This document shows positions 12,429 to 38,700 of a DNA stretch of 64,000 nt, piece by piece; positions within the stretch are counted from its first letter, which is position 1, and every line of letters starts with the position of its first letter. The DNA lies in the NCBI GenBank assembly GCA_964270895.1, contig OZ185437.1; one strand, 5' to 3'. This stretch comes from Podarcis filfolensis. Lineage: Eukaryota. Below the pieces are notes generated by a model that saw only the letters and a program-made list of their open reading frames with translations, was not told the origin of the DNA and did no database searches. The position numbers and the translations under genes are program-made.

Positions 12429-12602
12429 CTCTGCAGTTGTGAGGAAAATTTCTTCACTTATATGTCTTATTCCACATGCAACAACTCCAAGGGCAACTCC
12501 TGGAAACACATAAGCATTGTTACCCTGTCCAGGAATAAAAGTGCGTCCATCTGGAAGAGTGACACAATCAAAAGGGCTTCCGCTTGCAAAAATGCCACGC
12601 CC
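12429..12602 (-). CDS. ME1: NADP-dependent malic enzyme, exon 12 (174 nt)
   Basis: TTAG|GGG...GAG|GTACTG; [58 protein letters not shown] contains the conserved ASGSPF and GQGNNxYVFPG motifs. Confidence 0.97.
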
Positions 12603-19900: not shown

Positions 19901-20011
19901 ATGTCTTTCAAGTCTCCTCCTCCACTGACAACAGGTCATCAGCACTCACTCCCATATCTGCATCCCGCACTCTTGGCTGTGGGTGATGGCAAACTGCATT
20001 CGTCACACACT

Positions 20012-20197
20012 CTGGATTGATGTTGAATTAGGGAAGATTTGGCTTGGAGTCCATGCTTAGCCATGATGCTGACTGCATGTCCTTGGGCACGTCACTAACT
20101 CTGCTTAAACTACCTCACAAGATTACTGTGAGGATTAAATGTGATAATCCCATGCATGCCACTTTAAGCTATTTAGTGAAAAGGCAAAATATAAATG
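20012..20197 (+). mobile_element. MIR-like SINE, old
   Basis: TAGCCATGATGCTGACTG...CTACCTCACAAGATTACTGTGAGGATTAAA...TATAAATG; boundaries approximate. Confidence 0.55.
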
Positions 20198-20330
20198 AGA
20201 ATGATAGACAGAAAGAAACATTCGATATGTTCTGCTTCCTTTAATTCAGACTTTTCTAGAGACAAATAAATTAGGAGAAAAGTAATATTATCTACCAGGA
20301 TTTCCTGTATTTACATGCTACTCTCTTTGG

Positions 20331-20502
20331 CTGCGCTGCTCTGGTTCGCCAGAAGCTGCTCAGTCATGCTGGCCACATGACCCAGAAGCTGTCTGCGGAC
20401 AAACACCAGCTCCCTCAGCCAGTAAAGCAAGATGAGCACTGCAACCCCAGAATCGTACGCGACTGGACTTAACGGTCAGGGGTCCCTTTACCTTTACCTT
20501 AA
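20331..20502 (+). mobile_element. Sauria SINE, 5'-truncated
   Basis: Ends ...GACTGGACTTAACGGTCAGGGGTCCCTTTACCTTTACCTT (ACCTTT tail); 8-bp TSD CTCTTTGG at 20323-20330 and 20503-20510. Confidence 0.88.
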
Positions 20503-21327
20503 CTCTTTGGTAGAGATATGGGCCATGTAATATTAATGACTGCATAGAACTGTGGAGGAACAAACATCGCCTCCTCTTTTTGGATAAACTCATCCAACTC
20601 CAGGAATATTATAATAACATTAATATGCAACGTCATCCATCTAGCTAGAAGTTATAGTGATTGCACAAAATCAATGCACACAACCTCAATGGCCATGTGA
20701 GGCCAACTATAGAAGGGTTCCTCAACTGCATCATAAAGCTTCTTTAAACTTTACAGTTTTATGTGAAAGCACACTCCACTTCAAGTCTCACTATTCAGAT
20801 CCACCAGTCATTAAAGACCCAGGGGAGTAGAATGCATTTATACACACATGGTGACAAGAGAAAGACATCAACTGAGGGAAGGATGAGAATGCAATAGCAA
20901 ATCAAAGTTTCTTTTCACTAAGACCAACCATAAAAAACCATGCAAACAGCATATGAAGAAGTTGAATAAATCAGCTGTATTATTTTGTTTTTCTTGTTAA
21001 TTTTAAGAACCTCAGAACTATAACATAAATGACCACTTTTATTTTGGTTCTTGAAATATGTTTCTGTCTTAGCTCTGGCATGGGGAAGAAATGAGGTAAA
21101 AGTAACTGATGTAGTCACCCAGCAGCTTTGAATTTCTAACCACTGCTGATACCATAGCAAACCACAGCATGTAGGAAGGGCATGATCTCCTCTCCATCAC
21201 TATGCAATAGAGTTATTTGAGGCAACACAGCTGAACTTTAAGTAGAAGTCTGGCAAACATAAAGGAAAATATCAGCAGGAAATTATCTCTTATATCAGCA
21301 TTTCTTTTCTCCTTTTGATAAATAACT

Positions 21328-22122
21328 TCATGTTTGTGGGCCCAAGCCCAGCAGGCCGGTGATCTGAGTGGTGATCTTATAATGACAGAAATGATTACAA
21401 GACAATATTATGGGATTGAAATTGGCCATAACTTTTTTTTATTACTGATGTAGTAGGCTATGGCATAGTCAGTGGGTATGCATCCTGAATCAATCAACCC
21501 ACCTGCTGATTGATTACTCCTTCAGGGTCGATCCTGTGTCTCCCGATGACACAAATCAAATGGGGTGGTCCCACCAGGATGCCAGTAGGATGTTCTATAG
21601 TCCGACAGCCCCCTGTCCACCAGACAGACTCTCCAGCACTTAGACTATGGATCCAACCCAATGCCTTTTTCTGCCATCTGAGTCAGCCCCTCCCTGCCAG
21701 CTTAACAACAAACCAATCACATCTGCAACCAATCCCATAGGCCCCAGTAAATACCCATCAGCCAGGCCTCATTGCCACTTGGTGATAAGTATACTCTGTC
21801 AGGCTGGTATAAGTCCAATTTATCAAATGTGTTGCCAGGGTGGCATATGATATGACCACCCAACTGTGCTATGCAGGACATAGCTCAGTTAACTTTCTCC
21901 CATGAATGGCTAACATGTGCAGGCAGTGCTGCACCTCACCAGTGGTGTTGCTCCAGGTTCTCAGACCAGAAGATGGTCAAACTAGGGTGTGTTGCCTGCA
22001 GAGCGACGAGATCTGTGGTTCCTGCCAATATGAGGGTGATGCCCTTCCTATCAGCCACATCATTTTCTCCGAATTGTATCATGATGGCATCTGGCGTCCC
22101 AAGGAATTCTGTATTATATTCA
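21328..22122 (-). mobile_element. 795-bp insert, probably the 3' part of a Ngaro/DIRS-type (tyrosine-recombinase) retrotransposon
   Basis: Bounded by a perfect 29-bp direct repeat. Contains a decayed SGNH-hydrolase frame followed by ~390 nt of non-coding sequence with AATAAA. Family assignment is inferred from the domain position. Confidence 0.6.
21717..22121 (-). pseudogene. decayed SGNH/GDSL hydrolase domain (C-terminal part), TE-derived
   Basis: Manual translation: EYNTEFLGTPDAIMIQFGENDVADRKG...TIFWSENLEQHHW*GAA...EKVN*AM...LGGHIICHP...LYQPDRVYLSPSGNEAWLMGIYWGLWDWLQM*. Block III GxND is present; block V DGVH reads DRVY. Two TGA stops, no frameshift. Confidence 0.7.
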
Positions 22123-22535
22123 CATTTCTTTTCTCCTTTTGATAAATAACTATCAAACTAAGTTCTATTCAGACTAGACCCATAGAAATGAATGGACCTA
22201 GGTTAGTCATGCCCATTAATTTTCATGGGTCTTCTCTGAGTATGACTAACATTTGATACAACACAATATGATTTACATTGCTGAACACACTCACATAAAT
22301 TGACATGTTCATGGAAGATAAAAACAAAGTTAAACACTCCCCTTAGTGTTTATGTTAGTCAGCTTGCTGAAAAAAATCCAAATCAGGGTCAAAGAATATC
22401 ACTTAAGGAAATTATGGGGATAATTATCTTTCCAAAAAACACTGACCCAGTTTCACTTTTACTGGGTTACTTAGCCACCTCTAACACATGTAAGTGTAAG
22501 GAAAAGGAGACATCACTGAGACCTAAGAACATATA

Positions 22536-23241
22536 CCGTATTTTTCGCCCTATAGGACGCACCTTTTCCCCTCCAAAAATGAAGGGGAAATCTGGGTGCG
22601 TCCTATGGGGCGAATGCAGGCTTTCGCTGAAGCTTGGAGAGCGAGAGGGGTCGGTGCGCACCGACCCCTCTCGCTCTCCAGGCTTCAGGAAGACATCCGC
22701 AGCCTAGGCAGCCCTGAGGGAGTTCCCGCAGGGCTGTCTAGGCTGTGGATAGCAGCCTGCTTCCCAGAGCACCGGGCGCGCTGAAAGCAGAGCGCCCGGG
22801 GCTTCGGGAATGCATCCGCAGCCTAGGCAGCCCTGCGGGAGGTCCCGCAGGGCTGTCTAGGCTGCGGATAGCAGCCTGCCGCCCAACGCGAGGGGCGCCC
22901 TGAAGCAGAGCGTCCCTCGCGCCGGGCAGACATCTGCAGCGTGGGGAGCCCTGCAGGAGTTCCCCGCAGGGCTCCCCACGCTGCGGATAGCAGCCTGCCG
23001 CCCGGCGCGCAAGGCACCCTGAAGCAGAGCACCCCGCGCGCCGGGCAGACATCGGCCAGCCCCACAAGCTCGGGGGGCAGCAGGGAGGCGCAGCGCCGCC
23101 ATCCCGCTGTTCCTCGACCTGGTTCGGTTTCCCCGACCTGGGTTTGGGGGGAAATAAAGGGGGGGAAATTTCCTTTATTTCCCCCCCAAAAAACTAGGTG
23201 CGTCCTATGGGACGGAGCGTCCTATGGGACGAAAAATACAG
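22536..23241. mobile_element. Tc2-like (TcMar) non-autonomous element, 706 bp, GC-rich hairpin interior
   Basis: TA|CCGTATTTTTCG...CGAAAAATACAG|TA; the CCGTA terminus is typical of the Tc2 group. Subterminal GCGTCCTATGGG at 22598, 23200 and 23217; three ~119-bp internal units. Confidence 0.88.
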
Positions 23242-23339
23242 TAGATTGAGACATATATATGTTGTTTCAACCAATAATGTACAGAAAAAGTGGAATACTT
23301 CAAATATGCATTTGTATAATAAGGAAAAATCTGCATCAC

Positions 23340-23453
23340 CTTTACAATTAATCCTTTGGAATCAACCATCCATATCTTTTTGATTGCTTCCTTTTTCGGT
23401 GTCCCTTCCTTTTCCATGGCCATAAGAATCAGATTGGCGATCCCCAGAGCTGC
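23340..23453 (-). CDS. ME1: NADP-dependent malic enzyme, exon 9 (114 nt)
   Basis: TTAAG|GCA...AAG|GTGATG; [38 protein letters not shown]. The DSK motif carries the Ser/Lys NADP determinants. Confidence 0.96.
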
Positions 23454-24595
23454 CTTAACAAGAAAAAGGAGAGAAAAAATAATTAGGTCATGAAATTCAA
23501 GTTTTATAGCTTATCTTCACTCTTTTAGAACCTATTAGCCACAGTAACAATGATAACTGTAGAAACAGCCTACCTTAAAAAACTCCTGTACCTCTGGTGG
23601 TCCACAGACCACAGTTTGGTACCCCAATATACGAGATATATATGAGGAAGAGTGAGAAGCAAACATGATGCTTGAATAATCCATATCTGTTTAATTTTGA
23701 AATAACTGCTTACTGTTTTTCTGATTCTGTATCCAATGAAAATGGCATCTCTTGCAGACATGCTAGAAAGTTATCATGTAAGTTATGACAGAAAGCTGGA
23801 CTAGGCAAGAAGCATGTTTTTTCAAACAGATGTCCTAGAATAACTGTGACATGGCACCCAATGGACCCCCTCCCACCAGGTTCTAAAAAGGTTATGTGAC
23901 ATACATGTAGCAGGCTCCAAAAATTCCAAAGGATGAATACAACATTAAAGATCACAAGTAGACATAAACAATATCTGACAACTCTGTTGAGTCATAAAAG
24001 CTCCCAAGCTACTCAATAAGACTGACATCTATCTATCTACATATAACAGTAAGGCTCAAAGGACAATAGCCATTTAGTTTCCATCTTGCATAGAGTTCTT
24101 GATCATCATAACGACAGCAGCAATAACAACAACAAATCTCAGGTAGGGGAAAGGAAAAGCAGGACTGAGAACTTCAGACAATATAGATATGCTTTTCAGT
24201 GCTCTAAACCTATATGAAGGTAACACTAGATTACTAATTGCTTTATGCCATGAAAAAGATTTTTGTGTGTGGTGGTCGTCATTATTGTTTTTTACTAATT
24301 GACCTTGCATCTTGTTAATAAATTGATTCTTTTGGGTGATAGCCTTCAAATATTATGACGGGAAGGACTGAAGGTAACTGCAAGGGGATGTATTGCATGT
24401 GAATGTGAAGAAGCAAACTTAATAGACACAATCTATAAATTTTAAACTGAAGTTATTTTCATACCAAAAAATAATGATGATGATTGGGGGGGGGGGTGAA
24501 GCGAGGGGGTTGAATGGGCAGCAAGGGCCAAATGCTTGTATCAGAGTTAATCTTTAACAAGGAAATGCTTCAATGGAGCCTTTGGGGTCTATATA

Positions 24596-32546: not shown

Positions 32547-32723
<177 letters not shown>

Positions 32724-35700: not shown

Positions 35701-38700
35701 TTTTTTTCCATTACGAAGTACTGTTCTAAGTTGATACCAATAATTGGATTTCTGCTGCCCCAAAGCCTAGGAAGCGGTATGAGTCACAGAACATCTGGAT
35801 TCCCTGATCCTCACTGCTTCTTAGTCATAATTGTTGTCCTCTTTCCCATCTGGTGCTGTGATCTCTTGCTTCCTTCAGGTTCACTGAGATTTCAATGAAT
35901 CAATTTTAGTCCACCACCCCATGTTTTGAGGGGTTTGCTGTTACTAAAGAATCTCAGTAATAAAAGTCCAGCACATTTCCCCCTTCTATTATTTCTATTT
36001 TCTTCAGTGCAGGGTCTTCATTCATCCAATTCTCTTCTTGTTAAGCCCCTTATCTCTTTTATTAAACATAACCATAATTTCTCTCTTAAACATAAGTTGC
36101 TGCTATACACCAAGTCAAATCACTGTTTCAGCAAATTCAATGCTAAACTCTCCAAGGTCTCATGCAGATACCTTCCCCAGCCTGATTAATATTAATATTT
36201 TGGCAATCATAGCTATATTTTACATGGCATGGTTTAACTGGAGATGTCCAGAACCTTTCTGCACACAGCACACATGTGCTAGCAACAAACTACACCCAGA
36301 ACTGTTTTATGACTAACTTCTTGTCTTCTATTCTAAATTTTACATTTTTAAGTGTGTATGTATTAGGGGTGTGCACTGATCATATTTGGACCCCAAAGCA
36401 CAGGACCAGATAAAATAAATCACCTTGATTGCAAGTTATGAAGGAACTCCCTCTGCACCTTCCTGATCCTGGTATTTTCCTAAAGTTAGATTCTCCCTCT
36501 TACCTCACATTCCAACATCTTCCTTATATACGTAGTAAACTTAAGGGGGGGGGTTGTATACTGTCCACAGCATTTATTTGATACCTAGATGGACGAAACA
36601 CTTCAGGAGGCTTTGCTCTGAATTGTGCAGCTTCGTAAAGCTCCTGTTTAACCTCAGATGTGCTCAGTTTTCCACAAATACATTCCAACTTGTCTTAAGC
36701 CTTTGTCCAAATCCAGTGCACTACCCTAGTGTGTACGGCTGGAGATAATATGTAGATATATAAAAGAAGGCACTTCAGTTTGTTCAAGGAGGAATCACCA
36801 TTTCCACAAATTCCTCTCTCATCACATCACACACTGTTGCAGCAGAAAAGAGACAAGCCAAAACCCTGTTCCATGTGTGGAATAATGCTCACACTTCTCT
36901 GGGTTCAAACAACTTTATACGTTTTCACAACAGAAACTTGAAATGTTGTGGACACATTGTCCAAGTAATTCAAATTATGAAGAAGAAAAATCTGAAAACA
37001 GGAAATTTTGTAACTTTCACTCAGAACACAGGATATACACTATGCTACACCTCAACATAGCAATCAGCACTGTTATACACAGCAATCATTGCAAGCCATA
37101 CATGAGACATTGTGAAGATGTATGGTTTCTCCTCAGAGCTTTAAATAGCCTTAGGAGAAGTTCACATTTCATTATGTAAATGGTATTGTAGATATATAAT
37201 AGAAGGCACTTCATAGGTGTTCCTTTTACCATCTATACTAAGAAGTACCATTATTTGCACAAGTCTACTCTGTATTCCCTTCACTACTTCAGTCCTTTTT
37301 GCTTCCTTTCTCAGTTTTTTGTTACTGCTATGATCCAAGTACTAATGCAATATCTATTCATTTTGTTTTATTTTGTTTTTTATAATCTGTTTTGGCAAGG
37401 ACCTTCTAAAGCTCTTGTAAAGTTCCTTCTTTCAATACTATATTAATAATTATTATTTCATTCCTTTATCGCAATACAATTTTGGGCTATGATGCTGAAA
37501 GACAGCAGAGCTACAGTGAAGTCAATTTTGGCTTAAGAAAAATATTAAATAAGCACCATATGTTCTTTGTAAACAGTACGATATTCAGAAAATAAGATTT
37601 TAACTGAGGAAACCTTGGTTTTCAGGATTTCCGAGCTAGAGGCACTTGCAATTAGCTTATTATCTCTTGAGCAAAATAAGTTCTTAATAACAACAGTTAT
37701 AAACATGCAGTCTGGATTTCTGGGATTGCATGCATTCTCTATGCCTTCCTTTTCTCCACCGCCACAATATGACTTGGCAAAGGTATTGTGTATCAGTTCT
37801 CCTGCAAAGTCCATGGAAATTAAAGAAGGTAGCTGTATCCTCAAAATGGAGATTGTTATTGTTAAGTATTTTACAGTACTACCATACAGTACTGATTTTT
37901 TAAACAGACCAAACTAAATTGTAACAGTTATATCAGCTGTGAATAAGGTACAGTCAGGCTTACTAAAAACAAACAAACCACCCTTTAGTAAGCTTAAGGT
38001 TTTACTTATCAACCTGTGAATTTGCCTTCTTGTATTCTGCATGGCCAGCAGACCTCACAAAGGGTGGCTCGACCGCTCCTTGGCAAAAAGCCATGGGACT
38101 AAACTGCAGGTTTGGCAGACTTAAGCAGGAGACTGCCAAAGTCAGTTATGGTGACATCCAAAGCTAAGTAACCTGAAGACTAGAATTAGACATCTCAAAA
38201 TATCAGATAAAACTATAGGCTTAAGATTAGGAATATCAGGCGTAATAGCCAGCCAATTTCATTCCTTTTCATTTTCTTAAGACTATTCTGATACTGCATC
38301 TACAAGAATTAAAAACTTAAGAAAAGATGCACTCTTGACCCATTTATTATGGATCAAACTATAAGTATATTGTTTCATATTTGCCACTTAAAACATATTG
38401 TCCTTATTTGAAGATTAATCCCCTTATATGTTTACATTATTTATTTTAAAATAAAATATGCCTGCAATAGATAAAGGGTAATATCCAATAATAATCATAC
38501 TCAGAGTAGACCTATTTAGATCAATGGGTCTACTCACAGCATGATTTACTTCGTTTTCACCCAAGGTGCTTATTTGTTTTGGATTAATTGCCATCCCTTA
38601 TTTTGAAAAGTATTGAATTTTAACTTATGACTCAGACAAGTCATTTCTTATTAATGTAAGCCCTTGAGACCATCAGAGCAGGATAAAAATACGTTCCTCC

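Follow-up and report, generated by a model that had tools for sequence, protein, structure and literature searches.

How did a piece of retroelement come to lie in an intron of a lizard gene, between two exact copies of one host sequence? The question is raised by a locus on contig OZ185437.1 of the Podarcis filfolensis assembly GCA_964270895.1, which we analyzed as a single stretch of 64,000 nt (the window). There, a 29-mer occurs at 21299-21327 and again at 22123-22151, and the insert between the copies measures 795 bp (21328-22122). On its minus strand, the insert carries what appears to be the remnant of an open reading frame (ORF) for an SGNH-hydrolase-type esterase. A first-pass annotation of the sequence had proposed that this is a 5′-truncated piece of a tyrosine-recombinase retroelement of the Ngaro type, inserted by a non-canonical route. 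Our analysis makes it probable that the locus holds a dead, fixed and neutrally decaying Ngaro-like fragment of ~770-795 bp, which seems to have entered by an unusual route.

The perfect 29-bp repeat around 795 bp, as annotated earlier, was exact at both sites, and no such match is expected by chance (0 matches expected, 100 shuffles). We compared the region 20900-22600 with Logan contigs of four other public runs. One run is a second, independent sample from organism A and the others are from organisms B, D and E, so that four of eight organisms were covered. Position 22122 is A in the window and G in all four (4/4) of these runs, hence the older exact repeat was 30 bp long (21298-21327 = 22122-22151). 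Both junctions were bridged by contigs of every run, with a single contig of organism B covering 20900-22557; an assembly artefact was therefore rejected. Tandem duplication was ruled out as well, because unrelated sequence follows the two repeats. The 29-mers and their depth bins were single-copy in the even-depth runs X1, X2 and X14, and near 2-fold in X17. Since both the repeats and the flanks adjoining them are single-copy, we regard the repeats as host sequence and not as element termini. An insertion accompanied by a 30-bp duplication is the simplest reading of this arrangement.

The likeness between the two junctions continues leftward beyond the exact repeat. Repeat finding aligned 21276-21327 with 22100-22151 (52 nt, 85%), and blastn recovered the same imperfect continuation over 47 nt at 87%. 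Of the 23 nt that adjoin the 29-mer, 15 match between the left flank and the 5′ end of the insert, or 16 when the older G at 22122 is restored. Among 200,000 random pairs of 23-mers drawn from the region, a match of 15/23 arose 26 times, and an equally good extension score was reached by 195 of 200,000 random pairs, which places the junction homeology at p ~1e-4 to 1e-3. Moreover, homology to SGNH proteins begins at the inner edge of the stretch 22100-22122 (residue 7-8 of the frame, ~22100-22103). Judged from the sequence, this homeology points to an end joining that would have been guided by imperfect pairing.

The minus-strand frame (22121-21717) comprises 135 codons with two internal TGA stops and no frameshift, and its block V reads DRVY; all of these earlier observations were reproduced. 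An exhaustive HMMER search of 1.8 billion proteins with the first piece of the frame (61 aa) returned 23 proteins with E values from 8e-9 to 7e-4. The ten matches that were looked up were mostly squamate, from Podarcis, Zootoca, Lacerta, Eublepharis and Paroedura, and were named SGNH hydrolase-type esterase or uncharacterized. When the frame was translated with X at both internal stops, it gave a single colinear alignment with these relatives, which spans residues 7-8 to 130-134 and covers their C-terminal ~127 residues. The alignments scored up to 102-109 bits at 35-43% identity, and the C-terminal end of the frame coincided with the C-terminus of the relatives. Piece 3, which had not been used in finding the relatives, matched their C-termini with E values down to 3e-14, while 50 shuffles gave at most 4.4 bits.

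The link from the frame to the SGNH fold is transitive, leading from the frame to the squamate proteins, and from these to PF13472 (Lipase_GDSL_2) and to solved SGNH esterases. Eight of 11 relatives matched PF13472, with a best E of 8e-8 and with the scores given for single members all under the curated cut-off, and a family profile of the relatives matched the solved SGNH esterases. In the Atlas, the relative P0004 scored 0.95-0.98 to GDSL clusters, whereas the frame itself gave weak GDSL leads only. Pfam found no match for the two long pieces of the frame, even at E 10, and a PDB sequence search with both pieces gave chance matches only. A word-based protein search with piece 1, which covers only proteins of 34-107 aa, produced no candidate. 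The search of the read-through frame that the annotation had called for thus failed on the pieces directly and succeeded through their relatives. Taken together, the alignments support the assignment of the frame as a real, 5′-truncated SGNH-esterase remnant, as had been predicted. Block I (the GDS-type serine nucleophile, GHS in the SGNH relatives) and the glycine of block II are absent, and the lost N-terminal part would amount to ~60-75 residues, because in stand-alone relatives the position matching residue 7-8 of the frame is residue ~60-75. Both internal stops stand where the family has arginine, which fits CpG decay of CGA codons, the origin already suggested for them. A pseudogene of a host SGNH gene was rejected, since the relatives are multi-copy, recombinase-linked ORFs.

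Ngaro-like elements (order DIRS) with a fourth ORF, encoding an SGNH hydrolase, were reportedly described by Goodwin and Poulter in 2004. In the published gene order of such elements, the SGNH ORF comes after the recombinase, and DIRS-53_XT and DIRS-54_XT of Xenopus are Ngaro-like elements that carry it (PMC9210276). We found the same order among the relatives of the frame. In the gecko model P0011, the N-part of a tyrosine recombinase is fused to an SGNH domain of this family, and this N-part is 88% identical to the xerD-like protein P0041, which carries PF13495 and PF00589. The metagenome contig L002 carries two ORF pieces that match the catalytic half of P0041 at 37% and 44% identity, and the recombinase C-terminus ends ~50 nt before an SGNH ORF of 195 aa with a GHS block I. 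This ORF starts just before block I, the same start as in P0004, the best match of the frame. Since these relatives stand directly behind a tyrosine recombinase, as in the published Ngaro-like order, they indirectly support a Ngaro-type origin. In the fragment, the native stop of the SGNH ORF is followed by 389 bp without a coding signal, as would be expected of a last ORF in a Ngaro-like DIRS element; the order recombinase-SGNH itself is seen only in the relatives. On this comparison, we consider it quite probable that the fragment stems from a Ngaro-like tyrosine-recombinase retroelement. This parentage is likely but indirect, and the fragment would be a derivative of the Ngaro kind and not itself a member.

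Several side observations concern these relatives. L002:13-1162 (ERZ1739169 NODE-8026) contains the C-terminal half of the recombinase in two frames and then the intact SGNH ORF, with L001 and L003 being related contigs; it looks like the 3′ half of a Ngaro-type element from an animal in the metagenome. The SGNH family was not met in viral contigs. Gecko models fuse the SGNH domain to the recombinase N-part (P0011), to a ZNF318-like protein and to an olfactory receptor (P0020/P0025 and P0029), and these fusions are probably annotation chimeras created from intronic or nearby copies of the element. A word-based protein search for long fusions with residues 690-887 of P0021 returned P0021 alone.

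Read in the sense of the frame, the insert comprises the C-terminal two thirds of the SGNH ORF, then ~250 bp of apparently element-derived non-coding sequence, and then ~140 bp that appear not to be element sequence. GC content is 0.45-0.53 in the insert and 0.32-0.40 in the flanks, except for the last ~140 bp of the insert. Within the non-coding part, the 57-bp core at 21641-21697 reached 15-30-fold depth in every run, and 21470-21526 ~2-fold. The core lies right behind the SGNH stop, and in the four taxa its 15-30-fold depth compares with 1-2-fold in the adjoining ORF; across the element family, this short non-coding core has been conserved far better than the coding sequence. Depth at ≥90% likeness was otherwise mostly single-copy, so that relatives of the element part are at least ~10% diverged, and the last ~140 bp have no relatives. 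This 3′ stretch (21328-21469) looks like non-element DNA and resembles the flank of a donor locus, with its boundary at ~21470 drawn from depth and composition only. Its only A-run (8 A) lies in AATAAAAAAAA at 21433-21443, ~105 nt from the junction. The earlier statement that no poly(A) tail is present was borne out: the 3′ junction reads ...ACATGAA beside the repeat, with neither a terminal poly(A) nor a microsatellite tail.

Other searches of the non-coding parts were negative. Pfam detected no coding signal in the 389 bp after the stop when all stop-to-stop segments of both strands were searched, with a sensitivity limited by their short length (36-76 aa). No internal direct repeat of ≥12 nt was found in 21328-21760 apart from a trivial 12-mer pair. 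The predicted RNA fold of 21430-21716 on the minus strand was not unusual (z-score -0.49). A tRNA scan of 21000-22600 was empty, and Rfam matched nothing in the insert when 20000-24000 was searched, with sub-threshold microRNA-like matches only, in the neighboring GC-rich repeat. Blastn found no second copy of the insert within the window, and a nucleotide comparison of the 3′ part of the insert with the 3′ parts of L001-L003 yielded nothing.

The insert and both of its internal stops were present in 4/4 of the other taxa, which diverge from the window by ~0.7-2.7% at this locus. Variable sites numbered 9 in 384 bp of the frame, distributed over first, second and third codon positions as 6, 2 and 1; the corresponding counts were 11 in 389 bp for the remaining insert, and 7 in 399 bp and 7 in 344 bp for the flanks. 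In organism B, 27 bp of the frame are deleted at 21991. From these sequences, the frame appears to be decaying neutrally, with no sign of selection or function. At residues 9 and 17, the other taxa keep P and L, as in the family consensus, and therefore the window's own lineage has drifted further. The unbroken 30-mer pair fits an insertion that is a few % of divergence old. We also note that the window differs from all four runs at 21386, 21754, 21912, 22097 and 22122, and has a 5-bp gap behind 21616 where the others read CTGGA; these differences are either private changes of the individual or lineage, or assembly errors.

Several points weigh against the interpretation as an inserted Ngaro-like fragment. 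The orthologue comparison proposed in the first-pass annotation revealed no empty site with a single 29-mer: organisms A, B, D and E showed neither an empty site nor an empty allele, and no contig skips the insert, so that its status as an insertion follows from the duplication alone. The homeology of 15-16/23 at the junction could be due to chance. The search did not turn up the parent element. In contrast to complete Ngaro-like DIRS elements, the fragment has lost the N-terminal third of the SGNH ORF; gag is lacking, and reverse transcriptase (RT)/RNase H, recombinase and split direct repeats are all absent from 21328-22122. Of the expected repeat order (A1 ... B1 A2 B2), no B1/B2-type repeat occurs in the 389 bp after the stop, and A1 is not expected here because the piece is 5′-truncated. 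The proposal of a Ngaro-type origin thus stands on the recombinase-SGNH order of the relatives, and the parent and its other hallmarks did not appear. Finally, among solved structures the family profile matched best to 4C1B, the esterase of zebrafish L2 ORF1 (E 1e-6), with cellular GDSL lipases behind it at ~1e-3, and several squamate relatives (P0012, P0019 and P0023) have a disordered, Lys/Arg-rich N-terminal part before the esterase, like esterase-type ORF1 proteins.

The last two observations would also be expected if the remnant came from ORF1 of a CR1-type long interspersed nuclear element (LINE), the insert being an internal fragment of that LINE. Canonical vertebrate CR1 elements, which are present in squamates, encode esterase-type ORF1s (PMC13343379), and ZfL2-1 ORF1p combines an arginine-rich motif with an esterase (PMC3905857), so that this rival has to be taken seriously. 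The frame shares with ZfL2-1 ORF1p the SGNH fold and the C-terminal position of the esterase (4C1B, PMC3905857). Nevertheless, similarity to the ZfL2-1 esterase is low, and the GHS block I of the relatives and the motif WS..L....WRGA differ from it. The annotation had named a CR1/L2 ORF1 esterase followed by ORF2 as the finding that would speak against its proposal; the closest structure is indeed such an esterase, but no ORF2 follows, and no frame of the 389 bp after the stop gives an endonuclease or RT signal. Moreover, ORF1 of a LINE lies kilobases from the 3′ end and would be absent from a 5′-truncated copy. The frame also shares the WS..L....W(R)GA motif and its C-terminal end with the recombinase-linked proteins, and P0004 is a stand-alone ORF of 189 aa whose start lies just ahead of block I, as does that of the L002 ORF downstream of the recombinase. 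We therefore consider a CR1 origin improbable.

Integration by a tyrosine recombinase makes no target duplication. It follows that the element's own recombinase did not insert a fragment flanked by 30 duplicated bp, and the duplication together with the junction homeology argues for entry through break repair or through borrowed LINE machinery. We propose that the fragment was copied into a break or into a pair of staggered nicks. Because the frame reads on the minus strand, the plus strand is its antisense, and the new strand would have run from the left 30-mer rightwards. Synthesis would have begun at the 3′ end of the plus-strand 30-mer and continued through a foreign template, until the last 23 nt of the new strand (22100-22122) annealed with mismatches (16/23) to the host DNA immediately left of the 30-mer. 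As this annealing point lies 53 nt behind the point of departure, onward synthesis would have copied the 30-mer a second time. The geometry fits two routes equally: a template-switch break repair, of the type of synthesis-dependent strand annealing (SDSA) or microhomology-mediated break-induced replication (MMBIR), and a LINE-type target-primed reverse transcription with homeology-mediated attachment of the 5′ end. Homology-mediated 5′ attachment has been described for target-primed reverse transcription (PMC4245944).

Break-repair and template-switch routes, taken together, have in our estimate a little less than an even chance. Templated and captured break insertions arise by retroelement cDNA capture or by template switching (SDSA/MMBIR), and a clean 30-bp duplication is unusual in end-joining capture. 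The insert resembles templated insertions as an internal mobile-element fragment of composite make-up, with only a local duplication and junction homeology, and differs from them in that no donor locus was identified. In one variant, the insert would be a DNA-level copy of another locus (an old piece of the element together with ~140 bp of flanking DNA), produced by template-switch or synthesis-dependent repair with no RNA intermediate. Such a copy would account for the contrast between the GC-rich, partly multi-copy 21470-22100 and the AT-rich, single-copy 21328-21469, for the want of a retroposition tail, for an element cut at both ends whose second B-type repeat was not found, and for homeology that sits at the return junction. 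The four runs contain no donor at ≥90% likeness (the insert depth being mostly single-copy), and the boundary at ~21470 comes from depth and composition only, so this variant is possible and falls short of probable.

We rate as rather unlikely that LINE machinery reverse-transcribed a Ngaro transcript in trans, with the 30 bp as its target-site duplication. As in 5′-truncated LINE retrocopies (PMC4245944), a duplication of tens of bp flanks the insert, the 5′ part is missing, and the start of the insert resembles the flank beyond the duplication. Unlike in these retrocopies, the insert ends without a poly(A), microsatellite or other LINE tail, the sole A-run being ~105 nt inside, and its last ~140 bp are AT-rich, single-copy and non-element-looking. 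No endonuclease motif is present, since in the sense orientation the nick site reads GAT/AGTT and not TT/AAAA; the homeology extends over 16/23 positions and not over a few exact bases; and the duplication is longer than the 15 bp (human L1) and 5 bp (ZfL2-1) of de novo inserts (PMC4245944). The first-pass annotation had suggested cDNA capture or LINE-assisted insertion; a duplication without a tail agrees with a non-canonical route, while, with no empty site seen, a single locus does not decide between these options. By far the least probable explanation is that the 29-mers are terminal repeats of the element itself and that no target was duplicated. Ngaro-like elements do have direct terminal repeats (PMC9210276), and the lack of an empty site would agree with this. 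The 29-mers are single-copy, or near 2-fold in X17, while the 57-bp core of the insert is 15-30-fold; furthermore, a terminal repeat would be expected in the 5′ half of the element, which is missing here, and the homeology continues into the left flank.

Table 1. Coordinates of the features at the insert (positions in the window).
Feature	Position	Strand	Remark
Left copy of the exact direct repeat	21299..21327		30 bp in older form, with g at 21298
Right copy of the exact direct repeat	22123..22151		C>T at 22136 in organism B
Left-flank stretch homeologous to the insert 5′ end	21276..21298		15/23, or 16/23 with older G
5′-terminal 23 nt of the insert, codons EYNTEFL	22100..22122	-	Homeologous to 21276-21298
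SGNH-esterase remnant, C-terminal ~127 codons of a ~190-aa ORF	21717..22100	-	Native stop at 21717-21719 (TGA)
Block III, GEND	22059..22070	-	Aligns with the family consensus GENDL
Internal TGA stop	21936..21938	-	Family W-R-G column; common to all four other taxa
Internal TGA stop	21885..21887	-	Family N-R column; common to all four other taxa
Block V, DRVY (DGVH in the family)	21789..21800	-	Asp kept, catalytic His lost
GC-rich non-coding stretch after the stop	21470..21716	-	Taken as element-derived
AT-richer single-copy 3′ tail of the insert	21328..21469	-	May not be element-derived

As for the surroundings of the insert (the features of the insert itself are listed in Table 1), exons of a malic enzyme lie on the minus strand near 32657, 25543, 12590 and 6538. 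This places the insert in an intron of the gene, in the sense orientation. By its sequence, the exon near 12590 belongs to an NADP malic enzyme, the structures of ME1 and ME3 scoring equally (E ~1e-27); the intron, formerly assigned to ME1, is thus that of an NADP malic enzyme, and ME1 and ME3 fit it alike. A high-copy repeat at 22154-22267 begins 2-3 bp past the right 29-mer, with ~100-fold depth at ≥90% likeness in 4/4 runs, and consequently the insertion struck the edge of an older repeat. This repeat could form a long hairpin with arms at 22202-22215 and 22237-22250, and a diverged copy of it lies at 38482-38528. Further away, 22496-23250 reached a depth of 1e5-1e6 and represents the end of an element resembling a miniature inverted-repeat transposable element, the interior of which (22681-23060) consists of GC-rich 119-bp tandem hairpin modules.

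For the host gene, the insert is an ordinary intronic remnant of a dead transposon; its junction is mildly unusual, and there is no sign of constraint or function. Its interest lies elsewhere: it is a clean single case in which sequence of a recombinase-type retroelement, which normally integrates without duplication, is accompanied by a long duplication and junction homeology. The locus also provides a handle on a lizard SGNH family characterized by a GHS block I, the WRGA motif and a linkage to a recombinase. We put forward, as a speculative idea that we would not ourselves call likely, that a Ngaro piece was mobilized by a foreign route, through LINE machinery in trans or template-switch repair of a break, and that the imperfect 23-nt match both chose the truncation point and caused the 30-bp duplication. 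A genome-wide tally of such fragments would show how frequent non-canonical copies of DIRS-order elements are. If the idea is true, and if the pattern recurs in other truncated Ngaro pieces, it would amount to an undescribed side-route by which fragments of DIRS-order elements spread.

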